A program made the translations under genes and the position numbers. A DNA stretch of 33,641 nt, taken from sequence record AJ748296.1; one strand, 5' to 3'. Positions 3,962-24,768 of this stretch are shown piece by piece; the stretch's first letter is position 1, and each line of letters opens with the position of its first letter. Below the pieces are notes generated by a model. It ran no database searches. It saw nothing but the letters and a program-made list of their open reading frames with translations, and was not told the DNA's origin.

Positions 3962-5161
3962 CTATTTTGGTATGACATTTATTTTACTTTTTCTTAATAA
4001 GTATACTATAGCTCCTATTATTGGTAATATCATAATTCTTAATATTGTATATTCTATATTTCCGGCAATTACAAATTTATAGAATATTGGATTTTGATAT
4101 CCTAGATAAAAGAATAGGAATATCTGAATTGCTAAAGATGTTAGAACTATAGAAAATAATTTTTTATCATTCATAAGTTTCAAATATGCAAATGCTACAA
4201 TTATGAAGTTCCAAAATATGAATAATAATCCGTCTAGTCCGAAAGATATGTTAAATCCTAGCAAGTTTTCTAGAACATTTGCTATTGTTTCTGTTGAGAA
4301 AATTAGCAATAAAACATTTGGATTTATTTTGCTAAATTTTTCTGGTAATACTTTATCAAAACTCATAGTTTGAATTAATCTACTTTGGATTTTATTTGCA
4401 ATTGGCATGTAACTAAAGAACCAAATTGGCATTAGTGCAAACAATATGTTTAAATTTGAATAGCTATCTAGAATTGATAATATTGCTACGACACCATAAC
4501 TTACAAAATATCCTATCATACTTGATTTTTTAATATTTTTAATTTCTCCAGCTATATAACTAATTGCATTTATGAAAATGAAAGCAGATAAATCAAATAG
4601 TAAAGCAGATAATAAAGTATTAGAAATTGTGAAAGTCTGATATTGATAATTGAAAGATTTAAAAGCTATAAATATTGCAATTATTATTTGGAATATTGCT
4701 AATATGTCTACAATTTTTGCATATATTCTCTTACTTGCTATAATTAGTAAAACAAGAGGAAATAGAGATTCGACAATTAGAAATTGTTCAAATTGATTTT
4801 GAATATTAAAGTTTAAGAGTACAAGATCTCCTAAGATTGGCTGAGATAGTACATATGTTAGCCATAATGAAATTCCAAAAATTGTGTAAAATTTTGAAGA
4901 AAATGCAGTTCTAATATAGGCGTAATCACCGCCATTTAATGGAAATTTTGTTGTTAGTTTATAGTACATTAAAAGAAGTGGAATTTCAAATACTGCTCCA
5001 ATTACAATTGCAAAAAGTAGATTTACATTTTTCATTAGACTTGAAACAAATAACGGATAACTTATTCCGCTTAAAATTCCCATATAGAGAAGATTTATTG
5101 AAAAAATATCTAAAACATTAAATGATTTAATTATTCCAGAACTTTTTCTTTCTAATTCCAT
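3962..5161 (-). CDS. APC-superfamily amino-acid permease-like membrane protein (ORF399)
   Basis: About 11-12 hydrophobic segments; N-terminal RKSSG..KSF..LD.F..NL..MG..SG..YP and P.NGGDY.YI motifs of archaeal APC permeases. Confidence 0.8.
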   Translation of the reverse strand: MELERKSSGIIKSFNVLDIFSINLLYMGILSGISYPLFVSSLMKNVNLLFAIVIGAVFEIPLLLMYYKLTTKFPLNGGDYAYIRTAFSSKFYTIFGISLWLTYVLSQPILGDLVLLNFNIQNQFEQFLIVESLFPLVLLIIASKRIYAKIVDILAIFQIIIAIFIAFKSFNYQYQTFTISNTLLSALLFDLSAFIFINAISYIAGEIKNIKKSSMIGYFVSYGVVAILSILDSYSNLNILFALMPIWFFSYMPIANKIQSRLIQTMSFDKVLPEKFSKINPNVLLLIFSTETIANVLENLLGFNISFGLDGLLFIFWNFIIVAFAYLKLMNDKKLFSIVLTSLAIQIFLFFYLGYQNPIFYKFVIAGNIEYTILRIMILPIIGAIVYLLRKSKINVIPK

Positions 5162-5204
5162 AAGCTAGCTAAATTGCTAAGACATAAATAAAGTCACACA
5201 ACTA

Positions 5205-5222
5205 ATACATAATATAATGTAT
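5205..5222. promoter_or_regulatory. Palindromic box ATACAT-N6-ATGTAT upstream of ORF399
   Basis: atacat aatata atgtat; recurs at 10774 and 20512, with one-mismatch copies at 11498, 14097 and 24821. Confidence 0.6.
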
Positions 5223-5397
5223 ATAGTGTGTTCTTTTTATAAGTAAAACTTGATTAAATTCTTATTTATGACAACAAAATTTTTTTATAAAAATCTCATA
5301 GCAAGTAAATCAAACCATATACATAATATATATTATATAGTATATTGGTTTAAGAATTAGTTGAGAAAAAAAAGAAAATATCTTTAATTAAATTTTT

Positions 5398-5568
5398 TTA
5401 ACCGTTTCTCTTTTGCAAATACTCCTTTATAGCCTCTTCAATTGCCTGAGTTAGCTGGAGATTATTTTTTGCACAATAAACTTTTAGTCTAGTCTTTAAA
5501 TCTTTATCCATATATATACCAAATACTGCTTTTTGTTTCTTTTTTTGACTCTGTTCTTGAGTTTGCAT
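5398..5568 (-). CDS. svtR: SvtR ribbon-helix-helix transcriptional repressor, 56 aa; not in the ORF track
   Basis: Manual translation MQTQEQSQKKKQKAVFGIYMDKDLKTRLKVYCAKNNLQLTQAIEEAIKEYLQKRNG*; RHH pattern, GAGG RBS, and canonical position next to rep. Confidence 0.92.
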   Translation of the reverse strand: MQTQEQSQKKKQKAVFGIYMDKDLKTRLKVYCAKNNLQLTQAIEEAIKEYLQKRNG

Positions 5569-9858: not shown

Positions 9859-10335
9859 TTAATCTTCTTTTGCTAAAGTTACTCCTTTTTGATTTTGATA
9901 TTTCCCGTTATAAGGCTTTTCAACTGGAGTTAAAGTATGGGCGAAAATTAAATGTAAAAATCTTTCTCCTGATTTTAATTTGACAGGAATTGAAGAACCA
10001 ACTAATTCTATAGTAAGTTGACCTTCAAATCCCGCATCTACAATTGTCGGCGGAATTAATAATCCTTTTCTTGCGAAAGTTGATCTTAAATTACAAAATG
10101 CTATAATATCATTTGATAATTTTATATATTCTTTTGTTGTTAAAAGTACATGTTCATTTGGATAAATTATAAATTCATCTCCTACTTCTTTTTCCATATT
10201 TTCTTTTATCCTAACTATTTCATTTCCAATTTTTAAGTCTACACCGTTTTCTCTAATTGTATCTTCACTTAATGGATCTATAACAAGCTTATTTGAATTT
10301 ATATATCTTTTTATATCTCTATCTGAAAGAATCAT
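9859..10335 (-). CDS. dut: dUTPase (dCTP deaminase/dUTPase family)
   Basis: [36 protein letters not shown] and YNGKYQNQ motifs. Confidence 0.95.
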
Positions 10336-10347
10336 CTTTTCTCAGTT

Positions 10348-10653
10348 TTAACTATCGTTTTCTGACATATTTATATCTCCACAGATTGCCGAAATTTTAA
10401 ACATATTTTTATCATATCTCCAATTTACTTTTATATAATTTGGATATTTGAAAGTACGAACTAAATATTTTAGCATAGACATCCCGGCTTTTTCATATTC
10501 TTTCTTTTTCATATTTATTTTTATTTGCATTAATATTATTTCTTCATCTTCAAAAACATTAAAGAAATAAATATTGTCGGAATATCTACTTTCTAGCCAA
10601 TTTCGGAATTGAATTATATATTTTCTACATTCATTCTTTATATCAATTTCCAT
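10348..10653 (-). CDS. Hypothetical 101-aa protein
   Basis: Clean ORF upstream of dut on the same strand; TGTCATA box at 10670-10676 (minus strand). Confidence 0.75.
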   Translation of the reverse strand: MEIDIKNECRKYIIQFRNWLESRYSDNIYFFNVFEDEEIILMQIKINMKKKEYEKAGMSMLKYLVRTFKYPNYIKVNWRYDKNMFKISAICGDINMSENDS

Positions 10654-10773
10654 ATTTTAGTTAAGCAGATATGACAATTTAATAGTTTTGTGTATTACAT
10701 TATATAGTATAATATATAGTATATAATTTCCGGGATTATTTTCATAGTAATTTTTACAAATCTTAGTAGTCAT

Positions 10774-10791
10774 ATACATTATATTATGTAT
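10774..10791. promoter_or_regulatory. Palindromic box ATACAT-N6-ATGTAT upstream of the coat-protein gene
   Basis: atacat tatatt atgtat, 50 nt before the ATG at 10842. Confidence 0.6.
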
Positions 10792-10841
10792 AAGACGTGA
10801 AAATTTATTAATTTAAAGAATAAAATTGATATTGACCAAAA

Positions 10842-11246
10842 ATGGCAAAAGGTCACACAAAAAGATCATATAGCCAAAGGTACGCAAAATGGCAAGCCAA
10901 ATTTAATGCGTTTAGTAACCCAACAGTAGCATCTACTATATTGTCAAATGTAGCTCCTGTTGCCCAACAGAATTTCCAGACTAATGTCCCAACATTTACC
11001 GCGGTTAACGAAAATGTTAGTGCAGTTCTTTCACAATATGGAATAACTGGGCCTAACAGAGCTATATATCAAGGTTTTGGTTTGAAGATTGCTAGAGCAC
11101 TTAATAGGATTGGGAGCGGGCCAGCTTTAGTAAATATGATAAACGGTTTGAAAAGTTATTATATTTCAGCTTTTAACGCTAATCCTCAAGTATTAGATGC
11201 TGTAGTAAATATAATAACTGGAAGCCCGACTGGATACGTAAGTTAA
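10842..11246 (+). CDS. Major coat protein (ORF134, SIRV2-fold MCP)
   Basis: MAKGHTKRSYSQRYAKWQAKFNAFSNPTVAST... recognisable rudivirus MCP with a basic N-terminus. Confidence 0.96.
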   Translation: MAKGHTKRSYSQRYAKWQAKFNAFSNPTVASTILSNVAPVAQQNFQTNVPTFTAVNENVSAVLSQYGITGPNRAIYQGFGLKIARALNRIGSGPALVNMINGLKSYYISAFNANPQVLDAVVNIITGSPTGYVS

Positions 11247-11280
11247 AATATTTAAGCTATTTTTTTCTTTTTTTCTTTAT
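11247..11280. terminator. T-rich convergent terminator between MCP and the zinc-finger gene
   Basis: Run ttttttcttttttcttt directly after the MCP stop. Confidence 0.5.
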
Positions 11281-11444
11281 TCTTCTTCAGTCTTTATTTC
11301 TATATATTCCCCAGTTCTCAAACTTATCCTCCTACAATTAGATAATTTTAAATTTGTATTATGCTTTCTTAAATGAGTTATCATACTTTTCCTTTTTATA
11401 TAAATTTCTCCACAAATTGGACATTCATATCCTAAGAGTGCCAT
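11277..11444 (-). CDS. C2H2 zinc-finger protein (55 aa from ATG 11444)
   Basis: YECPICGEIYIKRKSMITHLRKH; the track extends to a TTG at 11489 but ATG 11444 is the likelier start. Confidence 0.85.
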   Translation of the reverse strand: MALLGYECPICGEIYIKRKSMITHLRKHNTNLKLSNCRRISLRTGEYIEIKTEEE

Positions 11445-11576
11445 AAGGAGAAATTTGGATTTGACATTTTTAAATGCTATTAAATCCAATCAACCATATA
11501 CATTATATAATATATATGAATTATAGGTTAAGTTGTTAGTCAGCTTTATTTTTGTCATAATTTTTATTTTTATCTC

Positions 11577-12584
11577 ATGAAAACTGCAATTTTAACTATG
11601 AATTATTCTTCTATATCTAATGTTTCTGAAGATATTGCAGAAGTTTTGAGAGAAAATGGAGAAATCGTAACAATAACAAAAAATCCATTTTATATTCCAA
11701 AAGCTGAAAAATTAATAGTTTTCATTCCATTCCATCCGCCATCTCTAAATCCATATCTTTATGCTTTTTATCAATTTAATGGAAAGAAATTATTTTATAC
11801 TACTTGTGATGGAATTCCAAATATTGAAATTGTAAATAAGTATTTATTACAAGATGTTAAATTTATACCAAATTCAAAATTTTCAGCTATGAATTTACAA
11901 GAAGTAGGTCTACAAACAGATTTGCCAGTTTTCCATGGAATTAATTTTAAAATTGTAGAAAATGCCGAAAAATTAGTTCCACAATTAAAACAAAAGTTAG
12001 ATAAAGATTTTCCTAACACGATAAAATTTGGAATTGTGAGTGGATTAACAAAAAGAAAAAATATGGATTTAATGTTACAAGTTTTTAATGAACTAAATAC
12101 AAAATATCCAGATATTGCTAAAAAAATTCACTTTTTCGTAATTTCTCATAAACAATTTACGCAAAATGAAGTTCCCGCAAATGTACATTTTGTAGCAGAG
12201 TTTGGATTTAATAGTAGAGAATATATATTTGGATTTTATGGAGCTATGGATTATATTATTGTTCCAAGTGGAACAGAAGGATTTGGAATGCCAGTCCTTG
12301 AGAGTATGGCTATGGGAACTCCAGTTATCCATCAACTTATGCCCCCGTTTGATGAATTTACAAGCTGGCAGTGGAATTTATTAATTAAATCTTCAAAAGT
12401 TGAAGAATATTATGATAAAGAGCATGGACAAAAGTGGAAAATTCATAAATTTGAAATTGAAGATATGATAAATGCAATTATATTAGCTTCTGAACTTCAA
12501 GATAGAGAAGAAAGAAGTACTAAATTAAAAGAATTAGCAAAAAGATATGATATAAGAAATTTATATACTAGATTTTTAGAATGA
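11577..12584 (+). CDS. GT-B (GT4) glycosyltransferase (ORF335)
   Basis: RKN motif and PSGTEGFGMPVLESMAMGTPVI (E-X7-E). Confidence 0.93.
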   Translation: MKTAILTMNYSSISNVSEDIAEVLRENGEIVTITKNPFYIPKAEKLIVFIPFHPPSLNPYLYAFYQFNGKKLFYTTCDGIPNIEIVNKYLLQDVKFIPNSKFSAMNLQEVGLQTDLPVFHGINFKIVENAEKLVPQLKQKLDKDFPNTIKFGIVSGLTKRKNMDLMLQVFNELNTKYPDIAKKIHFFVISHKQFTQNEVPANVHFVAEFGFNSREYIFGFYGAMDYIIVPSGTEGFGMPVLESMAMGTPVIHQLMPPFDEFTSWQWNLLIKSSKVEEYYDKEHGQKWKIHKFEIEDMINAIILASELQDREERSTKLKELAKRYDIRNLYTRFLE

Positions 12585-12634
12585 TATAAATTTGTCATAT
12601 TCTTTATATTTTTATAGAGGAAAGAGGTGGAAAA

Positions 12635-13105
12635 ATGGTAATCGAAGTATTTTATATGTGTCCAATTGATTATAAAGATATTTTAACTCTTGACCTAGAT
12701 AAAGGAGGCATAGCAATAAGAGAATGTGATCATGTTTTTGGTTATATAATACCGCCTTCATTTCCGGAAAGAGAAGATAAAATTTGTCCTAAGCAATACA
12801 GAATTAGAACATGGACTGCTAATGAATGGAAATATGGAGTTTGTGTACAATCTAATGTATCATCTAAACATGTAGTTAGGAATATAAAGAAATTGAAAAA
12901 AACATTGAAAGAATTGTTGAATTATCGGGAAGACCAAATAATATATTTCATTCTTGATGGTTCTACAAGAAGAGAAATTATAGATAAGATAAAGGATATG
13001 ATAAAAGATATGTTTGTTGGTTATAAAGCAGATAGCGAATTTTGTACTCCTAAAATTATTACTATAGTAGGAGTTCTAAATAAAGTAACAATTTATTTTC
13101 TTTAG
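12635..13105 (+). CDS. Hypothetical 156-aa Cys-containing protein
   Basis: GAGGTGG RBS; TGTCATA box at 12593. Confidence 0.8.
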   Translation: MVIEVFYMCPIDYKDILTLDLDKGGIAIRECDHVFGYIIPPSFPEREDKICPKQYRIRTWTANEWKYGVCVQSNVSSKHVVRNIKKLKKTLKELLNYREDQIIYFILDGSTRREIIDKIKDMIKDMFVGYKADSEFCTPKIITIVGVLNKVTIYFL

Positions 13106-13166
13106 CCTTCTTCATTCTTATTAATATAAATTTGTCATAATACATAATATATAATAATGATAGAGA

Positions 13167-13295
13167 ATGAAAGTAAAAATAATATGTGAAAAATTAACTA
13201 CATTTCATATAAATTCTGAAGATGAAGAATTAGTAAATAGAATAATAAAAATGTGTAATGATTATAATTTAAATTACAAAATTGAACTTGAATAA
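13167..13295 (+). CDS. Candidate 42-aa small protein; not in the ORF track
   Basis: MKVKIICEKLTTFHINSEDEELVNRIIKMCNDYNLNYKIELE*; own TGTCATA box at 13133; fills the gap and ends 5 nt before the convergent ORF64. Confidence 0.55.
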   Translation: MKVKIICEKLTTFHINSEDEELVNRIIKMCNDYNLNYKIELE

Positions 13296-13300
13296 TTTTT

Positions 13301-13495
13301 TTACCATATTCCCCATTCTTTACTATCTATAAGTTTCATTTTTCCATTTTCTATCATATTTGCATAATCTTTTAATATTTTTGGCAATACTTTTTTTAAT
13401 TCTTCTTCTGTTGGCTTATTTGGAACTTGATCAATTAAAATATAAATCTTAATATGTAATTCTTTATTTTTTTCATCATAATAATAAGTTATCAT
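13301..13495 (-). CDS. Conserved rudiviral 64-aa protein
   Basis: Clean ORF with ATGA coupling to the upstream gene. Confidence 0.75.
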   Translation of the reverse strand: MITYYYDEKNKELHIKIYILIDQVPNKPTEEELKKVLPKILKDYANMIENGKMKLIDSKEWGIW

Positions 13496-13716
13496 TTTTG
13501 ATCCAACTTCCTTTTTATTTCTTCAACTTGTCTTGATAATTCATCTTGTTTTATTTTTAATTCTTCAATTTCTGTCTTTAGATTTGATAATTCTGAATTT
13601 ACTATCTCTTTTACTGCATCTTTTAATGCCTGTTTAATTTTTAGATATAATTGAATAATTGCAAATAATGTAGTTGTAGTAGTGGAAATTATAGTGAGGA
13701 CTAATGTAGTCTCACT
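13492..13716 (-). CDS. Membrane-anchored coiled-coil protein (74 aa from MSETT)
   Basis: Hydrophobic N-terminus then heptads ELSNLKTEIEELKIKQDELSRQVEEIKRKL; start at 13716 overlaps the ORF110 stop. Confidence 0.75.
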   Translation of the reverse strand, partial: SETTLVLTIISTTTTTLFAIIQLYLKIKQALKDAVKEIVNSELSNLKTEIEELKIKQDELSRQVEEIKRKLDQK

Positions 13717-14044
13717 CATCTTCATTTTCCTCCTCAGATAATTCAAAATTTGCAGTACTATTAATTTGTTTCGCGTAAGGTTGAGGATATACTACGCGAA
13801 AATCATCTATAAAAATCTGCTTAGTTTGTTGATCTTGAATTATAGAAAATTGAAAATAGAAAGTAAAACCTGGAATATAAAGGTCAACAATTAATGGATA
13901 ATCGATAGTTTTCATAACAATTATTGAATTTGGTAAAAAACGTGATAAACCATAAATTTGACCTCTCTGTTCTAATTCTTTTATTTTATCAATTGCAATT
14001 CTAACAACTCCAAAAATATTTTGAAAAGGATCTTCAATTCTCAT
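13712..14044 (-). CDS. Conserved rudiviral 110-aa protein
   Basis: Clean ORF with an acidic tail; palindrome-like box at 14097-14114 upstream. Confidence 0.8.
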   Translation of the reverse strand: MRIEDPFQNIFGVVRIAIDKIKELEQRGQIYGLSRFLPNSIIVMKTIDYPLIVDLYIPGFTFYFQFSIIQDQQTKQIFIDDFRVVYPQPYAKQINSTANFELSEEENEDE

Positions 14045-14133
14045 ATGATATCTTTTATTTCAAGCCGTTAAAAAATATACAAGTAGCATAACTCATATAT
14101 ATTATATAATGTATATAGTGTCTGAATTTTGTG

Positions 14134-15522
14134 TCATCTAACTGCAATATTTTGAAAGTTCTTATAGTAGAAAATTGGCTTATATTGTTTCGTTTTTGCA
14201 GATTTTTGAGCTAATTTTATCTGGTTTTCAATTTTAGCTTGTCCTTGTAATTGTTCTCCTAATTGTTGTGCATATTGCAAATCTTGATCTGTTAATCCAT
14301 AAAATTTCCATTTAGTTTTCCAATAGTTCAAAAAGTCTTGATATGATAATGTTCTTTTTCCAGAATTATAACTATAATTTTGTTGATATGGATATCTTGC
14401 AATTTCTATAATTGCACTTGCTATCATTTTCGCGTACCAAATATTTGAATATTTCTTATTTACAATTTTCTGAATTTGCAAAAATTGTTGATAGCTAACT
14501 GCATAGTTTTCAATTTCTGAACTATAAGCTATATTAATTCCACCAGGAGATGGATCATATAAATGCATTTTAAATAGATTTCCAAATATTGAAATTACGG
14601 TTTTATCTGCAGATAAAATAGCTATTAAATCATCTTGAGTAACATTTTCTGGATTAAATTCAGGCATTAGTACCGCAAAATCTAAAGGAGTATAATCCAA
14701 AATCATTCCAAAAACATCTGCAAAATATTGTAAAATCATACCATTTTGTAATTGAATTCCATTTTGAGTTTCAGGAGCTAAAACACATCTATCTAGCCAA
14801 CCGACATCTAAAGCAAATCCGTTATTTATTATGCTATTTAAGTCTGGAATAAATGCAATTATGAATTTAGCAAAATCTGGAAGTTGATTAAAGTTAATAT
14901 TTAAAGCATTTAATAAATCTATAATTCCGGTATCTGCAATATTATTATACATATAGTTATCTACATTTGGAATATTTGTAATTCCAGTTCCTAAAGTTGT
15001 AACATTTACACTTACATTTGTAGTAGTTAAACTAGAAAAGTATTGTTCAATTTTCTTACAAGATTGGTTTTGATATTCTGTAGCTAATGCCGGCTGATAT
15101 ACAGATAAATCAAAATAAGTTTCATCAAAAACTGCCGGTTGATATAAAATATTGCATAATTGTACATAATTATCATATAAACTAGTATAATTATTTAATA
15201 AACTTATTCCATTAGAAATTCCAAAATTTGCAGATTGACCTAAATTAAGAAATGTTTGAGAATTAAAATTTGGATTAAATACTGAAATTGCTAAATTGTT
15301 TAATGCAGAAAGTAAAGAAGAAATAATTGAAGCGTATGCAATTCCATAATTTGTATTTATGCCTAGAGGAATTTGAATATTTTCTAATGGAGTTGGTAAA
15401 ACTGATTCAACTCCAGCGTCAAACATTACAGAAAATGCAGGGAAAGATTTTCTATTCAATATTTTATTATATAAGTGATATTTCATACTTGCTATATTTC
15501 TCTGTCCTTTTCTCTTGCCCAT
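14134..15522 (-). CDS. Minor virion structural protein (ORF486/488 family; likely start MGKRK at 15522)
   Basis: Long ORF at the canonical position; the in-frame upstream extension to 15666 overlaps the divergent promoter and ORF154, so it is probably not translated. Confidence 0.85.
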   Translation of the reverse strand: MGKRKGQRNIASMKYHLYNKILNRKSFPAFSVMFDAGVESVLPTPLENIQIPLGINTNYGIAYASIISSLLSALNNLAISVFNPNFNSQTFLNLGQSANFGISNGISLLNNYTSLYDNYVQLCNILYQPAVFDETYFDLSVYQPALATEYQNQSCKKIEQYFSSLTTTNVSVNVTTLGTGITNIPNVDNYMYNNIADTGIIDLLNALNINFNQLPDFAKFIIAFIPDLNSIINNGFALDVGWLDRCVLAPETQNGIQLQNGMILQYFADVFGMILDYTPLDFAVLMPEFNPENVTQDDLIAILSADKTVISIFGNLFKMHLYDPSPGGINIAYSSEIENYAVSYQQFLQIQKIVNKKYSNIWYAKMIASAIIEIARYPYQQNYSYNSGKRTLSYQDFLNYWKTKWKFYGLTDQDLQYAQQLGEQLQGQAKIENQIKLAQKSAKTKQYKPIFYYKNFQNIAVR

Positions 15523-15608
15523 AGCTATCAATTTATATATCTCAAGTAGAAAAATAAACTTACAAATTGCATAATGTATATAAATGTCATACATTATTGA
15601 TTTAATAA

Positions 15609-16073
15609 ATGAATCAAAAATATGAAGTTGAAGAAATAAAAAATAAAGAATTAGTAAAATTAGCAAGAATGTTAATTGATTACTATCATATTCAAGGAAT
15701 GGTAAAGGGAGGTGGAGCTGGTAGAAATTCTAGATATTTTATGTATTTAGAAAAAGAAGATGACAAGAAATATATAGTAGCAGTTGCCTGGCTTCATGAT
15801 AATACTCCATTTCGTTTTATTGCACAACAATATAATATTCCAAACGATAGAAGTTATTTTATTAGAAGAGTAACTAAAACTGCTCCTGGAGATCATTTAG
15901 TGAATTTTCTAAATGATTTAGCTGAGAAACTGAAGAAAGATGGTTTTGAAGTTCTATGGACACTTGGTTTTCCAGACCATAGTAATGCTTTATATAAAAA
16001 AGCCGGGTTCAAATTAGTAGGTCAAACTAGTAGGACAAAACATGAAGTTTATGTAAAATATTTGAATAAGTGA
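15609..16073 (+). CDS. GNAT-fold acetyltransferase-like protein (ORF154), Mom-like pattern
   Basis: YFIRRV, HSNALYKKAGFKLVGQT (GNAT motif B), N-terminal ARMLIDYYH. Confidence 0.75.
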   Translation: MNQKYEVEEIKNKELVKLARMLIDYYHIQGMVKGGGAGRNSRYFMYLEKEDDKKYIVAVAWLHDNTPFRFIAQQYNIPNDRSYFIRRVTKTAPGDHLVNFLNDLAEKLKKDGFEVLWTLGFPDHSNALYKKAGFKLVGQTSRTKHEVYVKYLNK

Positions 16074-16079
16074 CAGAAA

Positions 16080-16445
16080 ATGAACATTAGACAGTCAGGT
16101 AAATATTATGAATATAAAACTTTAGAAATTCTTGAAAAAAATGGCTTTAAAGCATTAAGAATTCCAGTTTCTGGAACTGGAAAACAGGCACTTCCAGATC
16201 TTATAGCGACAAAAAATAATACAATTTATCCAATTGAAGTTAAATCAACTTCAAAAGATGTAGTAACTGTTAGAAATTTCCAAATTGAAAAACTGTTCAA
16301 ATTTTGTGAAATTTTTAATTTTTGTGAATGTCATCCACTTGTGACTGTGTACTATAAAAAATATAAAATTGTCATAGTCTATGAATTATCTCAAGATGTC
16401 AGAACAAAAGAAAAAATCAAATTTAAATACGGAATTAACAGCTAA
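16080..16445 (+). CDS. hjc: Holliday-junction resolvase (Hjc family, ORF121)
   Basis: SGKYYE, RIPVSG, PDLIA and IEVKS motifs of archaeal Hjc. Confidence 0.95.
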   Translation: MNIRQSGKYYEYKTLEILEKNGFKALRIPVSGTGKQALPDLIATKNNTIYPIEVKSTSKDVVTVRNFQIEKLFKFCEIFNFCECHPLVTVYYKKYKIVIVYELSQDVRTKEKIKFKYGINS

Positions 16446-16605
16446 ATTATACCTGGCGTTAGATGATTTGACTATGGCTTTAGCTACAGAAGATAAAGAA
16501 GAAGTTAGAAAAAGTGAAGTATTTCAGAAAGCATTAGAAGTTGTGAAAGTAGTTAAAGAAATGAGAAGATTACAAGTTAAACCGGCAGAAGGTGAGGAAA
16601 AATGA
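16381..16605 (+). CDS. Small helical protein (69-74 aa)
   Basis: Overlaps the hjc 3' end; TGTCATA box at 16370; ATGA coupling to the acrIII-1 start. Confidence 0.7.
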
Positions 16606-16946
16606 ATAAAGTCTATCTTGCAAATGCATTTTCAATAAATATGTTAACTAAATTTCCTACAAAAGTAGTAATTGATAAAATTGATAGATTAGAATTTTGT
16701 GAAAATATTGATAATGAAGATATAATTAATTCAATTGGACATGATTCAACAATTCAATTAATAAATTCACTATGCGGAACTACATTTCAAAAGAATAGAG
16801 TAGAAATTAAATTAGAGAAAGAAGATAAATTGTATGTTGTACAAATTTCACAGAGATTAGAAGAAGGAAAAATATTAACTCTTGAAGAGATATTGAAACT
16901 GTATGAAAGTGGAAAAGTTCAATTTTTTGAGATAATTGTAGACTAA
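16602..16946 (+). CDS. acrIII-1: AcrIII-1 viral ring nuclease (DUF1874, ORF114)
   Basis: [18 protein letters not shown] (catalytic His) and QRLEEGKIL motifs. Confidence 0.95.
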
Positions 16947-17223
16947 TAAGTAAAATAAAATTTTTTTCATCTTTTTGAGTTTGTTAGTTTAGGTTATCCC
17001 ATTTCTGCTAAAATTTTTTAATATATAAATGTTTTTACGCCGTTATTTTGCGTAATTTATCGATAAAAAAAGCTAATTTTACGTGAGTTAAAAGTTTAAA
17101 AAGATTTCTTGGAAATTCACGTTATTAGTTTATATAGTTGTCATTACAATTTTTCAACAGCTAAATGCAAAAAATTAACAGATGTAGAATTGAAAGAACT
17201 TTTAGATTTGTATTTTTTTAGTA

Positions 17224-20200
17224 ATGTTTATAATTTTGAAAAGAAACATTTTAATCAATATGAGTTTTCTACTAAATTTAGGAGAATTAGGAACATTCTT
17301 TGCAGATGAAATTGAAAATTTGGAAAACTTTACTAATTGGATATCTAGTGATTTTATAAATTTTATTAATGCAATAGTTAATGATATTAAAAATATTGCA
17401 AGTTTCCTAGGTCAAGCAATTTCCGATATTCCTACTTTTATGGTAAATATTGCAACTAATTTCTTAACAATTTTACAAAATTTTGTACAAACTGCAATTT
17501 CTACAATTCAAGGATTTGTTTCATGGTTTGAACAACAAGTTGTAGGAGCTTTTGAATTTCTATCTTCTATAGCGTCTGATTTTATAAATTCAGCATATTC
17601 ATTTTTCCAAAATGTGGCAAATGTATTTGCACAAATTATATCAGGTGTAATTTCGGATTTCTTAAACTTTTTTGGAGCTAATATGAAACATATTTCTAAT
17701 GCAATTTCTCAACTTAACCAATTTTTATCGCCATTTATTGCTCCAATTACAATTGGTAAATTTTTACCGGTAATTGTAGATAAATTGGCTGAAATTTTAC
17801 CAGAAATTGAAATAGATTTAGCTCCAGTTGGCTTAGGCGGGAAAATTCCAATTAAATTTGGAGAAATTATAAAAGCTTTTGCAGAAACTTCAGTAGATTT
17901 TTTAAATGAAATAAGAACAGAACTCGCGACAACTTTAAAACAATTTATAAAAGAACCATTTATTTCAGATTTTAAAATTTCTGCAAGAGAAATATTTAAT
18001 GAAATTGGTTTGGGCGATTTGCCATTTGCAGACCCGCCTTTTAACCTAATTGGAAGATGGGTAGCAGTTAGATCATTCGATGAAGTTAAAGATCATCTTA
18101 AAGAAACAATATTACTTACTGGATATCCAGAATGGTTTACTAACGCTTATCTAGAATCTCCAGTTAATGATTTCGCTCCTAGGAATCCTTTATTTAGACC
18201 AGTAGGAATTAGAGATTTAATTTTAGGAGCTCAATATGGAATTTTAAACATTTCAGATTTAGAAAAATATGCGTACAATAATTTATTAACTCCAAAAACT
18301 GCAAAATTAATGTATCAAAATCAAACTGCTAGAATTTTGCAGAGAGCTGTAGAACAAGGAATTAGACAATTCGTGATAACTCCTGAAAAAGCTTACCAAG
18401 AGATTATTGGAAATATTAATCTAACTGGTAAAGAATTGTTCTTAAAAACTTTCACATTAGAATATGAATATGCAGTTCAGAGAATTGTTAGACAATTCTT
18501 AAGATCATTATTATCTAGAGCATTATCAAATTTTGGAAGACCATATTTAGATTTTAAATATTTAGATGAGACAATTGCTAAATTATTTAAAGAACTAGGA
18601 TATCCAGAAGAAGTAAGAACAGTTTTCGATACTATGATTACACAATCTCAGCTAATTTATACTAATCAACTTCTATTAAGACAACTTCAACAAATTGTAA
18701 GACTAGGAATTTTTGATGAGAAAAAGATTAAAGAAGAATTGAAAGCTAATAAATTTAATGAACAAGTAGCATTACAAATTTTAGAAAGTGAACTGCAATT
18801 TGCACAATTGCAAAATACACTAAAAGAATATCAATTCAAATTGAAAAGTTTTCTAATTTCACCAAAAGATGTAGAAAACGATCTAAAGCATATTGGCTTC
18901 GATTCTGTAATTATTTCGGCTTTAATTTACGAAAATCAAATTGAGCCATTAATAAAATTCCAACTATCAAATATAGAAAGTTTGGCGAAAAAAGGCTATT
19001 TATCTTTAGATGAAATTAAAAAACAATTTAAAGCAATTGGAATAATAAAAGAATATGAAGACGCATTTATAAACTTTATAAATCAAGAATTACAAATATC
19101 TGCACTTTTGACAATTTTAAAAAGTCAATTGAGACAATTCCAAATAGATCCAAAAATTGCAGAAGCAGAATTAAAGAAATTGAATATTAATGAATACTTA
19201 TCAAATCAAATAATTCAAGAAGAGTATAATATAAATATAGCAAAATTACAATTAAGCGTAACTGAAAGTATTGCAAAAACATTATATTATGATCAACAAC
19301 AATTATCAGGAGAATTAGGAAAAATAGTAAAAGATAAAACTGCATTAGAACTGTATATTAAAAAATTATATTATGAATACATATATCCAAAAATTATTAA
19401 TTATCATTTACAATTAGCTAGACATGGAATTCTTTCAGATATTTCAAAATTGCCGAGAGAAGTTATAGAATATGAAATTAAGCCGGCACTATTAACTTAC
19501 CAAACTACATTAGAAATTGAATATATAAAAGAATCATTAAAAGATCTGGAAATTAAGCCTGATAATGCAATAAATGAATTAGAGAAATTAGGAATGCAAA
19601 AAGATATAGCTCAATTAATTGTAAATACCTATATTCCTACATTTTACAATATTCATACAATAATTCAAAATATTATTGAAGGACAATTGTATAAAGTCGG
19701 GAAAGTCCCAGTAAACTTAGGTAATGCAGAACCTGAATTAAAGAAATTAGGAATTCCTGATAGTCAAGTGAAAGCACTTTTGGAACAATATTCTACTACT
19801 TTTGGACTTGATATTTGGAGAAAATACTTACCTTCAATTTCCATAATAGAGAACGCAATAAAGTACAATTATCCAGATCAAAAATTAATAGAATATAGCT
19901 TTATCCCATCTGAATTATTGAATTTGTATACAAGTTATTATCAACATTTACTAATTGGTCAAGAAGTTCAATCTTTCAAATCTGAATATATAAATGCATT
20001 AATTTATAATTATCAGAATCTGCAATTAGAAAGTTTATTGAAACAATATGGAATAAATGAATCATTATTAAGCGTTATGAAATTATTTGCACAAGTAAGA
20101 AAAATTGTAACTGGACTTCAAGAACTATATCTCACGCCGACAAAAGCTCTTTCAATTAGCGAATATGTATCAAATCCACAACAATTACTACAAAAAGTAT

Positions 20201-20436
20201 TTACAGAATTCCAGATTCCGCAAGAACTACAAAATACATATTTTGAATATGCGAGAAATAGGAGAGTTAGTAGATATGTTAACGAAATAATTACAACAAT
20301 TAATCTATTATTTGAAAGACATAAAATTGACCTTAACACTGCACAATCCTATCTTCAACAACTAAAGAAATATGGATTAACAGATGAAGAAATTCAACTA
20401 ATATTACTCAATTGGCAATTAAGAAGTGCTTACTAA
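17224..20436 (+). CDS. Large virion terminal-fibre protein (ORF1070; alternative start at 17260)
   Basis: 1070-aa helical ORF at the canonical rudivirus position; amphipathic N-terminus and repeated ELKKLG-type units. Confidence 0.9.
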   Translation: MFIILKRNILINMSFLLNLGELGTFFADEIENLENFTNWISSDFINFINAIVNDIKNIASFLGQAISDIPTFMVNIATNFLTILQNFVQTAISTIQGFVSWFEQQVVGAFEFLSSIASDFINSAYSFFQNVANVFAQIISGVISDFLNFFGANMKHISNAISQLNQFLSPFIAPITIGKFLPVIVDKLAEILPEIEIDLAPVGLGGKIPIKFGEIIKAFAETSVDFLNEIRTELATTLKQFIKEPFISDFKISAREIFNEIGLGDLPFADPPFNLIGRWVAVRSFDEVKDHLKETILLTGYPEWFTNAYLESPVNDFAPRNPLFRPVGIRDLILGAQYGILNISDLEKYAYNNLLTPKTAKLMYQNQTARILQRAVEQGIRQFVITPEKAYQEIIGNINLTGKELFLKTFTLEYEYAVQRIVRQFLRSLLSRALSNFGRPYLDFKYLDETIAKLFKELGYPEEVRTVFDTMITQSQLIYTNQLLLRQLQQIVRLGIFDEKKIKEELKANKFNEQVALQILESELQFAQLQNTLKEYQFKLKSFLISPKDVENDLKHIGFDSVIISALIYENQIEPLIKFQLSNIESLAKKGYLSLDEIKKQFKAIGIIKEYEDAFINFINQELQISALLTILKSQLRQFQIDPKIAEAELKKLNINEYLSNQIIQEEYNINIAKLQLSVTESIAKTLYYDQQQLSGELGKIVKDKTALELYIKKLYYEYIYPKIINYHLQLARHGILSDISKLPREVIEYEIKPALLTYQTTLEIEYIKESLKDLEIKPDNAINELEKLGMQKDIAQLIVNTYIPTFYNIHTIIQNIIEGQLYKVGKVPVNLGNAEPELKKLGIPDSQVKALLEQYSTTFGLDIWRKYLPSISIIENAIKYNYPDQKLIEYSFIPSELLNLYTSYYQHLLIGQEVQSFKSEYINALIYNYQNLQLESLLKQYGINESLLSVMKLFAQVRKIVTGLQELYLTPTKALSISEYVSNPQQLLQKVFTEFQIPQELQNTYFEYARNRRVSRYVNEIITTINLLFERHKIDLNTAQSYLQQLKKYGLTDEEIQLILLNWQLRSAY

Positions 20437-23485: not shown

Positions 23486-23962
23486 CTATAATTTACAGAA
23501 TACAAATTCTCTATTATCATCAGTTACAAAAGTTAGAATTGTTCCGTATAATTTTCTTAATAAATCGAATCTATTTTCTGTCCAATCATGTATAGCTATG
23601 CAATATTGTTTATATTTCTGTAATTTAGAAAAATCTAGATTTTTCTCACAGCCTTCACAATCCATAACTAGAATATCAGTATCTGGATATTCGTTACTTT
23701 TCCATTCACCTTTTGATTCAACTTTATCACAAATCTTGAATTCTTTACAAACTGTTTCTTTAAAGATTTGATTTAGTTTCTCTTCTTTTTCAAATCCAAT
23801 TATCTTTTTCGCTCCTTTCAATAGAAAATATAAAGCAGAACTACCACAGTCATTTCCAATTATTGTAATTGTTTTATCTTTTACATCTAATTTTGAATAT
23901 GCAAATTCGAATTCCCTCCAATAACAGCACTGCAATTTACAAAAATAATCATCAAAATTCAT
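23486..23962 (-). CDS. SAM-dependent methyltransferase (ORF158, FkbM-like)
   Basis: IIGNDCGSSAL (motif I variant), IIGFEKE, and ILVMDCEGCE. Confidence 0.85.
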   Translation of the reverse strand: MNFDDYFCKLQCCYWREFEFAYSKLDVKDKTITIIGNDCGSSALYFLLKGAKKIIGFEKEEKLNQIFKETVCKEFKICDKVESKGEWKSNEYPDTDILVMDCEGCEKNLDFSKLQKYKQYCIAIHDWTENRFDLLRKLYGTILTFVTDDNREFVFCKL

Positions 23963-24768
23963 TATTGAACTACCTCAAATAGAGCATAAACTGTGCATTT
24001 TCCAGTAGCCCAGGCGTAAACGTTACTAGGATTTCTAACGTGAAATTCTAAACTATCTCCTGGCAAAATCGGGAAACTATTATATAATTTGTTACCGATA
24101 TATACAATATAATTACTTAAATTTTGCAAAATTATTCTAACTGTTTCTATTGTAGAACCATTATAAATTGGAGATGGAATTGTTGATAAACTAATTTGCA
24201 AACCTTCTATAGTTGGAGGAGATAAAAATAAAGTTAATTTATTTAAAGTATTAGCTAATCCGACAGTCGCTAAATAGAAATATGTGAAAGTATAAGCTAA
24301 AAAATCTGCAATTGAATAAAGAGCATTTATTCCAGTTTTTTGTAATTGTGAAATTTGAGAACTTAAAGTAGAAGTTAAATCTGAAATAGTTCTATACAAA
24401 TTTGTATATAAATCATATGAAATTTCTTTTGGTAATTGAGAAATAGAATAATAAAGTTGTTGATTTGAATATAGAATTTGGTTAATTTGTTGATTTGCAG
24501 TTCCAATAAAACCTGCAATATATATTGGATCTTGTTCTGTTAGTACTGGTTGTCCAGATACGTAAACTTCTTTCTGGAAAAATCCAGCTAATGCAGATAT
24601 ATTATTCGGGATATATAGATTTCCATTTTGTAGAATTGAAGTTAAGGAATTTCCACCAGTTTCATAAAGTTGATATAGAAGTAATGTAGCAGTGTTCCAC
24701 ATACTTGACGTTAATCTCTGGAATGGACTAGCTAAAAGTGAAGAAATTGAAGTATAAGTTACACTCAT
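23962..24768 (-). CDS. Conserved rudiviral 268-aa protein
   Basis: Clean ORF, Ser/Thr/Asn-rich like the virion proteins; palindrome-like box at 24821-24838. Confidence 0.8.
   Translation of the reverse strand: MSVTYTSISSLLASPFQRLTSSMWNTATLLLYQLYETGGNSLTSILQNGNLYIPNNISALAGFFQKEVYVSGQPVLTEQDPIYIAGFIGTANQQINQILYSNQQLYYSISQLPKEISYDLYTNLYRTISDLTSTLSSQISQLQKTGINALYSIADFLAYTFTYFYLATVGLANTLNKLTLFLSPPTIEGLQISLSTIPSPIYNGSTIETVRIILQNLSNYIVYIGNKLYNSFPILPGDSLEFHVRNPSNVYAWATGKCTVYALFEVVQ

Follow-up and report, generated by a model that had tools for sequence, protein, structure and literature searches.

ORF154 of Sulfolobus islandicus rudivirus 1 (SIRV1) variant XX, a small open reading frame (ORF) in the 33,641 bp sequence record AJ748296.1 (the whole record is referred to below as the window), probably encodes a stand-alone, minimal acyltransferase with the fold of the GCN5-related N-acetyltransferases (GNATs). 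According to the structural models, the protein would belong to the branch of this fold that includes Mom of phage Mu and the DruA domains. Its gene is part of the rudivirus core, is expressed at middle to late times and is co-transcribed with the gene of the Holliday junction resolvase Hjc. ORF154 is not a Mom orthologue. It fails three tests that define a Mom-family enzyme, and it has neither the helix-turn-helix-like (HTH-like) insertion nor the N-terminal hairpin of Mom, nor conserved equivalents of the Mom residue S124 and, at the gapless register, of D149 and R151. The gene under study is the following.

15609..16073, + strand: coding sequence of ORF154 (154 amino acids and a stop codon), ATG start, frame free of stops, annotated as CAG38845.1

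An initial annotation, made from the letters of the window, had noted a resemblance of this frame to Mom-type DNA-modifying GNAT enzymes and had taken it for a possible DNA hypermodification enzyme rather than a protein acetylase. The gene itself is real: it is listed among the ORFs, is open throughout and is identical to the annotated coding sequence, and a tblastn search of 50,697 phage records returned a 100% match at the same coordinates in AJ748296.1. The SIRV records still label the product a hypothetical protein. It is the orthologue of SIRV2 gp34, and in newer rudivirus records (MRV1 gp17, SSRV1, ARV3, SBRV1) the homologue is named "putative acetyltransferase". A "GCN5-family acetyltransferase" was listed among the genes common to rudiviruses by Baquero et al. 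(bioRxiv 10.1101/2020.01.16.907410); the GNAT assignment of the rudiviral gene is already in print.

Predicted fold and nearest structural neighbours

The AlphaFold2 model of ORF154, calculated from a 47-sequence alignment (predicted local distance difference test, pLDDT, 90.7; predicted template-modelling score, pTM, 0.87), adopts a GNAT fold with its elements in the order β1, one long α1, a Gly-rich loop, β2, β3, a helix (residues 66-74), β4, α3, β5, α4, β6 and β7. The β-α-β core of the GNATs with the V-shaped cleft between β4 and β5 is present in the model. The β4 strand, which carries an invariant Arg, is nine residues long, β6 (135-139) and β7 (146-151) are connected by a loop of six residues, and the protein ends at residue 154.

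When the modelled fold was compared with structure collections, Mu Mom and domains of the DruA type came out closest to it. Apart from the Taleaviricota cluster to which ORF154 itself belongs, the nearest clusters in the ESM Atlas all carry DruA or Mom, with template-modelling (TM) scores by query of 0.78-0.83 and a root-mean-square deviation of 2.3-2.7 Å over 144-151 residues; five DruA-bearing clusters fall within this TM range. The Atlas's own model of ORF154 gives the same picture, with canonical GNAT clusters reaching only TM 0.72-0.75. Language-model features point in the same direction, 24 of the 30 named matches belonging to the Mom family (score 0.95). In a Foldseek search many GNATs matched the model at similar scores, and Mom of a Salmonella phage ranked third in BFVD, a database from which the rudiviral family is apparently missing.

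DruA (DUF4338, PF14236), which occurs in defence proteins of Druantia type I and in proteins associated with IS4/ISAs1 transposases, is connected with Mom by the names and the Pfam co-hits of the Atlas clusters. Its domains are bacterial and usually lie within larger proteins (192-755 amino acids), whereas ORF154 is a stand-alone protein of an archaeal virus, and the hidden Markov model (HMM) of DruA does not match ORF154. Since DruA has no known biochemistry, the likeness transfers no function to the viral protein. The canonical acetyl-CoA-dependent GNATs (RimI, 5isv and 2cnm; Gcn5, 1qsn; Ard1, 4r3k and 4pv6; Naa50) are different in that ORF154 lacks both motif A and α2 and has a helix between β3 and β4 and a pair of Arg residues on β4; in addition to their lower TM scores in the Atlas, no HMM of these families matches ORF154 at threshold.

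Likeness to Mom and its limits

Mu Mom (PF25680; PDB code: 8bv8) moves glycine from Gly-tRNA(Gly) to the N6 of adenine in double-stranded DNA (dsDNA), which after rearrangement gives 6-NcmdA (PMC13219725). Both Mom and ORF154 have the GNAT core, a single α1, a helix between β3 and β4 and a nine-residue β4 with an invariant Arg, and both are basic viral proteins encoded by late or post-replicative genes. The conserved elements of ORF154 that bear on the comparison are encoded as follows.

15684..15689, + strand: codons of Y26-H27, right after α1; in the close family Y26 is invariant and H27 at least 90% conserved; H27 corresponds to Mom H58
15708..15719, + strand: codons of the Gly-rich loop G34-A37 (G-G-G-A) between α1 and β2; G34 is invariant; the part of the model with the lowest confidence
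15804..15830, + strand: codons of helix 66-74, inserted between β3 and β4; P67 is invariant
15864..15869, + strand: codons of R86-R87 on β4; R87 corresponds to Mom R111
15978..16010, + strand: codons of H124-F134, a stretch resembling GNAT motif B; N126 is invariant and Y129 at least 90% conserved; Y129 corresponds to Mom Y159

The helix between β3 and β4, which lies outside the canonical GNAT topology (PMC13219725), is present in Mom at Mu residues 91-97, where it likewise opens with an invariant proline (P91, the counterpart of P67). From β2 to β4 a gapless register between the two proteins at an offset of +24 pairs W61 with W85, P67 with P91 and R87 with R111. Across the divergent family as a whole, only R86 and R87 reach a conservation of at least 90%, and in the close family R87 is invariant. 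In Mom, R111 is essential (PMC13219725), and it is conserved in Mom but not across GNATs (PMC7261163). Motif B (N..A..LY.K.GF) with the Tyr of α4 is present at residues 126-134 (N126, Y129, G133-F134); the position of Mom Y159 is also a general GNAT feature (PMC7261163). The Gly-rich loop 34-37 is specific to the ORF154 family, stands in for the canonical α2 and is without a counterpart in Mom; it could serve to bind a substrate or a phosphate.

According to the initial annotation, several short strings of ORF154 follow the order of the Mom-family motifs. All of the quoted strings were found in that order (residues 19-27, 83-88, P93, 96-101, 108-110, 115-120 and 123-140), and the correspondence of order exceeds chance in two of three blocks. 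When the profile of the ORF154 family was slid along that of the Mom family, the α1/His block scored best at an offset of +31 (z-score 3.6) and the α4-β6 block at +30 (z-score 4.0), exactly the colinear offsets that the fold would predict. The predicted fold and some signature residues thus support a likeness to Mom-type GNATs; membership of the Mom family, in the light of the HMM and profile-profile nulls and the missing insertion described below, is not upheld.

Several results weigh against the grouping with Mom. The central β2-β4 block with its offset of +24 ranks only third to fourth in the sliding score. The residue equivalences were drawn from DSSP strings and family alignments, and are therefore correspondences of secondary-structure register and not of superposed coordinates. 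The C-terminal motif of ORF154 is of the ordinary acetyl-CoA GNAT type. Foldseek alone places Mom (8bv8, the S124A variant of Mu Mom) only 22nd in the PDB, and in the PDB structure searches Mom exceeds RimI by 0.8-1.0 Z, a tie by the standard of the tool itself; we take this margin as meaningful because of the ESM Atlas neighbours and the language-model features. At the level of sequence ORF154 matched no model of Pfam, NCBIfam or PADLOC, including those of Mom (PF25680) and DruA (PF14236). When the HMMs of Mom, DruA and Acetyltransf_1 were run over all six frames of the record, none of them matched ORF154. Family members matched generic GNAT models only, all below threshold: Acetyltransf_1 was matched by 9 of 47 (best E 0.005), the others being FR47 and Acetyltransf_7/10. 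An hhalign comparison of the ORF154 family with a 39-member Mom alignment gave probabilities of 2.8%, 0.2% and 1.3%.

The sequence-level nulls extend to the whole family. None of the 47 close and 23 divergent members matched PF25680 or PF14236, for Mom even at E≤10, whereas Mu Mom itself (from NC_000929) scores 253 bits on PF25680, whose gathering score is 27.1 bits; PADLOC models did not match any family member either. A profile search of the PDB with 47 homologues yielded GNAT matches only, all of them sub-threshold, in which the C-terminal stretch of ORF154 was aligned with AAC(6') and a putative acetyltransferase. ORF154 is by sequence an orphan and forms a separate family, for which there is no Pfam model. 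Some matches were rejected as fortuitous. A match of the Mom HMM at 23906-24097 (12.6 bits, E 0.0015 for the record) lies in a frame with four stops on the opposite strand in the region of ORF268 and was judged to be chance. The hhalign alignments with Mom hinged on a WLHD..P string that is shared by accident and does not agree with the register of the fold; when ORF154 was compared with Mu Mom by BLASTP, only short chance segments were obtained, one of them the same string. Myoglobin matches at E ~0.1, obtained in a single-sequence search of the PDB, were likewise chance.

The differences from Mom are considerable. Mu Mom has 241 amino acids, ORF154 only 154, and there is no detectable sequence homology between them. 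Mom has an N-terminal β-hairpin, the HTH-like insertion and a C-terminal extension, none of which is found in ORF154. The insertion, located between β6 and β7 (Mu 175-209), is absent from the ORF154 model; in Mom it has been modelled as a DNA-binding element, and its deletion abolishes activity (PMC13219725). No conserved Ser was found as an equivalent of S124, the essential Ser with which α3 of Mom begins, the ORF154 positions 96-99 being variable (H/Y/W, L, V/I, N/S/D/E/K). At the gapless Y129/Y159 register, D149 and R151, which follow β5 in Mom, fall on L119 and F121, where there are no conserved counterparts, and the conserved D123-H124-S125-N126 loop may fill their space. At the position of Mom W48, which belongs to the interface of the obligate homodimer, the ORF154 residue is not aromatic (K17/L18). 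While in Mu the com gene precedes and overlaps mom, no com-like regulator is annotated beside ORF154, which, in addition, belongs to an archaeal virus.

We propose that ORF154 is catalytically active, and that the acyl donor would be bound in the β4/β5 cleft and the acyl group passed to an amine group on a macromolecule. The pocket would be built by the conserved residues H27, R86/R87, H124-S125-N126 and Y129, in which the Arg pair, by analogy with the role proposed for Mom R111, may grip a phosphate-bearing substrate.

A narrow rudiviral family beside Hjc

ORF154 is present at full length in all 38 matching records among the 50,697 phage records, all of them Rudiviridae, with 54-100% identity; no match was found outside this family in the same records, nor any in a plasmid collection. 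A homologue was found in SIRV1-11, SRV, ARV2/3, MRV1, SSRV1 and SBRV1. The "putative acetyltransferase" genes of the other rudiviruses, together with SIRV2 gp34, are true orthologues (54-94% identity over the full length), belong to the core and lie beside Hjc; PHROGs returned for ORF154 only its own family of unknown function, phrog_8069. A word search found 57 close homologues, mostly in hot-spring metagenomes, and an exhaustive HMM search of 1.84 billion representatives only 31 matching clusters; judged by these sequence searches, the family is small and narrow. It is also basic (median isoelectric point, pI, 9.4), which is not diagnostic.

The contigs that carry the most distant homologues resemble archaeal viruses, except for one that looks cellular. 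The neighbouring genes on these metagenomic contigs have nothing detectable in common with SIRV1 proteins, and no conserved partner therefore emerged beyond the rudiviruses. One of the distant homologues is carried by a 39.5-kb metagenomic contig, on which the gene order is mirrored around ~15.5 kb (10639-14372 versus 16701-20434), as would result if the assembly of a linear genome had turned back on itself at a hairpin terminus. This contig probably represents an archaeal virus that is not yet described; it also encodes Hjc, a PD-(D/E)XK (Cas4-like) nuclease, a MoxR ATPase with a von Willebrand factor A (VWA) protein, ribbon-helix-helix (RHH) regulators and a large protein with an intein. Another distant homologue (positions 10001-10435 of its contig) lies on the cellular-looking contig of 59 kb, where cas1-cas2-cas4 are ~3 kb away and cas6 and a gene pair of toxin-antitoxin type are close by.

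Close copies of ORF154 (90-94% identity) are encoded on contigs of three bacterial assemblies, Planomonospora alba JCM 9373 (5001-5462 of the contig), Streptomyces gamaensis and Aquimarina litoralis JCM 15974. The Planomonospora alba contig, with 31,951 bp, is nearly as long as a rudivirus genome. The assemblies seem to have been contaminated by SIRV-like DNA, which would explain the NCBI cluster name "MULTISPECIES: hypothetical protein [Bacteria]".

In the window, which has a G+C content of ~25% throughout, ORF154 is the first gene of a four-gene unit preceded by a candidate promoter element.

15577..15584, + strand: TATA-like box TATATAAA, ~25-32 nt 5' of the ORF154 ATG, read from the sequence
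16080..16445, + strand: ORF121, Holliday junction resolvase Hjc (PF01870, E 1.3e-17), beginning 6 nt past the ORF154 stop
16381..16605, + strand: ORF74, a small conserved gene overlapping both neighbours
16602..16946, + strand: ORF114a, DUF1874/STIV_B116-like, of the AcrIII-1 ring nuclease family (PF08960, E 5.5e-29), the last gene of the unit

The PF01870 and PF08960 matches and the overlapping ends bear out the earlier proposal that ORF154 heads a unit with hjc and acrIII-1. ORF74, for which no Pfam family was found, is read in a different frame from hjc and shares 65 nt with the 3' end of that gene; with the start of the DUF1874 gene it shares 4 nt. For SIRV1 and SIRV2, a promoter of the operon located upstream of the unit has been described (bioRxiv 10.1101/2023.01.10.523387). 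The TATATAAA box is a candidate archaeal promoter from which a leaderless or near-leaderless transcript of the four genes may arise, since its spacing to the start codon matches the usual archaeal TATA-to-start distance. The half-sites ATGTAT (15574-15579) and ATACAT (15589-15594) lie on either side of the box. The annotated start of ORF486 on the minus strand and the ORF154 ATG on the plus strand are separated by 14 bp (15594-15609), so that the promoter of each gene must fall within the coding region of the other; in the program-made ORF list, ORF486 reaches as far as a TTG at 15666 and overlaps the start of ORF154. A sigma-70 promoter scan gave counts near those of shuffled sequence, and a terminator scan a single terminator-like site, on the opposite strand; neither scan is applicable to an archaeal virus.

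The GNAT gene adjoins hjc in SIRV1, SIRV2, SRV and SBRV1, and in MRV1 the order of the two is swapped. The DUF1874 gene is missing from the corresponding unit of SRV and MRV1, therefore the link to anti-defence is accessory. The anti-defence context that the initial annotation had seen in the unit is also weakened by the fact that SIRV2 gp37, the DUF1874 protein, does not act as an anti-CRISPR during infection; it inhibits a host lysine methyltransferase, and the SIRV2 four-gene operon is expressed at middle to late times (bioRxiv 10.1101/2023.01.10.523387). Expression at this stage beside Hjc would fit a post-replicative modification of DNA, by analogy with Mom, and an operon partner that frees lysines from methylation fits a lysine acetyltransferase equally. 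In the searchable literature we found nothing relevant on SIRV1 ORF154 or SIRV2 gp34, nor on DUF4338 together with Mom, and no link between rudiviral GNATs and Mom.

Possible substrates and their meaning

The substrate of ORF154 may be a lysine or an N-terminus of a protein, which we regard as quite possible though short of probable, and the same grade applies to a nucleic-acid-linked substrate of any kind; a DNA base, which is included in the latter, is on its own unlikely. A small molecule would be an improbable substrate, and what is left falls to other substrates or to a protein with no catalytic function.

If ORF154 were an ordinary acetyl-CoA-dependent protein N-acetyltransferase, for which there is a fair chance but less than an even one, it would acetylate lysines or N-termini of the host chromatin proteins Cren7, Sso7d and Alba or of viral proteins. 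It may then pair with gp37/ORF114, which, by blocking the host lysine methyltransferase, would leave lysines free, and the likeness to Mom would be that of a common compact GNAT core only. The motif-B-like N126..Y129..G133-F134 stretch that aligns with AAC(6') and the putative acetyltransferase, the weak matches to the Pfam acetyltransferase models, the published annotation as a GCN5-family acetyltransferase and the place in one operon with an inhibitor of lysine methylation all agree with this. Motif A (Q/R-x-x-G-x-G/A), the pyrophosphate-binding loop, is however absent: loop 91-96 reads T-A-P-G-D-H, and the β4-α3 loop is short and varies in sequence and length, with indels, in divergent members. 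No GNAT model reaches threshold, the nearest Atlas neighbours are all DruA/Mom and not canonical GNATs, and the near-invariant Arg pair of β4 is a trait of Mom that is absent from GNATs generally. The pairing with DUF1874 is not conserved either, given its loss from the unit in SRV and MRV1.

A Mom-type hypermodification enzyme that acts late and acylates or aminoacylates adenine, or a different base, of the replicated viral dsDNA, with charged tRNA as a possible donor, is an unlikely alternative. The modification would precede Hjc-dependent maturation and packaging and would shield the genome from host nucleases. Mom as the best structural match, the Mom/DruA branch as the source of all nearest Atlas neighbours, and R87, H27 and Y129 at the positions of R111, H58 and Y159 speak for such an activity, as do the DNA-centred contexts of the branch (anti-restriction, Druantia and fusions with DDE transposases), the adjacency to Hjc kept across rudivirus genera, the middle to late timing, which recalls the post-replicative action of Mom in the lytic phase, and the basic character of the family. 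Against it stand the missing HTH-like insertion, which is essential in Mom, the missing conserved counterparts of the essential S124 and, at the gapless register, of the essential R151 and of D149, and the negative HMM and profile comparisons with Mom; a basic pI is common among proteins of rudiviruses. Modified bases in rudivirus DNA are not reported in the searchable literature, which is absence of evidence only.

It is rather improbable that ORF154 works on or with aminoacyl-tRNA instead of DNA, either taking charged tRNA as donor for some other acceptor, like FemX or L/F-transferase, or acetylating aminoacyl-tRNA, like TacT or AtaT, and so tuning late translation. Mom, the nearest solved structure, takes Gly-tRNA(Gly) as its donor, and superpositions with FemX and TacT define its two modes of nucleic-acid binding (PMC13219725). 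The conserved Arg pair and a basic surface would fit the binding of a CCA end, and the missing DNA-binding insertion poses no problem for a tRNA substrate. However, none of the searches brought out a particular resemblance to FemX, TacT or L/F-transferase, there is no antitoxin-like partner gene, and the proposal is purely inferential. The degenerate motif A, the loss of N126 and Y129 in the most divergent members and the position of the gene between virion-protein genes might suggest that ORF154 has the GNAT fold but no catalytic activity and that its part in the maturation of the genome or the assembly of the virion is structural or regulatory. This is highly improbable in view of the polar pocket (H27, R86, R87, H124, S125, N126, Y129) that is strongly conserved in the rudiviral family, and the searchable literature holds no evidence for ORF154 as a virion component.

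The ORF154 gene is one of the few enzyme genes in the rudivirus core genome and has so far been filed as a generic GCN5-family acetyltransferase. What is new here is that its predicted fold groups with those of Mom and DruA, which form a branch of the GNATs associated with conflicts over DNA. Mom, of the same branch, was shown in 2026 to use charged tRNA for DNA modification, and this chemistry together with the shared branch makes the prediction for ORF154 a specific one, open to direct tests in SIRV2 and S. islandicus, a system amenable to genetics. If the protein acetylates proteins, its pairing with gp37 would indicate that the virus has a programme for rewriting lysine marks. If its chemistry on DNA or tRNA is confirmed, Mom-type hypermodification would be extended to archaeal viruses and a minimal scaffold for the study of the branch would be gained. 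That rudiviruses carry a minimal Mom-type enzyme which acts late, beside Hjc, on the bases of replicated viral DNA, possibly from charged tRNA, is a conjecture to which we give a small but appreciable chance; if true, archaeal viruses would gain their first case of Mom-type DNA hypermodification, and the Mom/DruA branch of the GNATs would span both prokaryotic domains.

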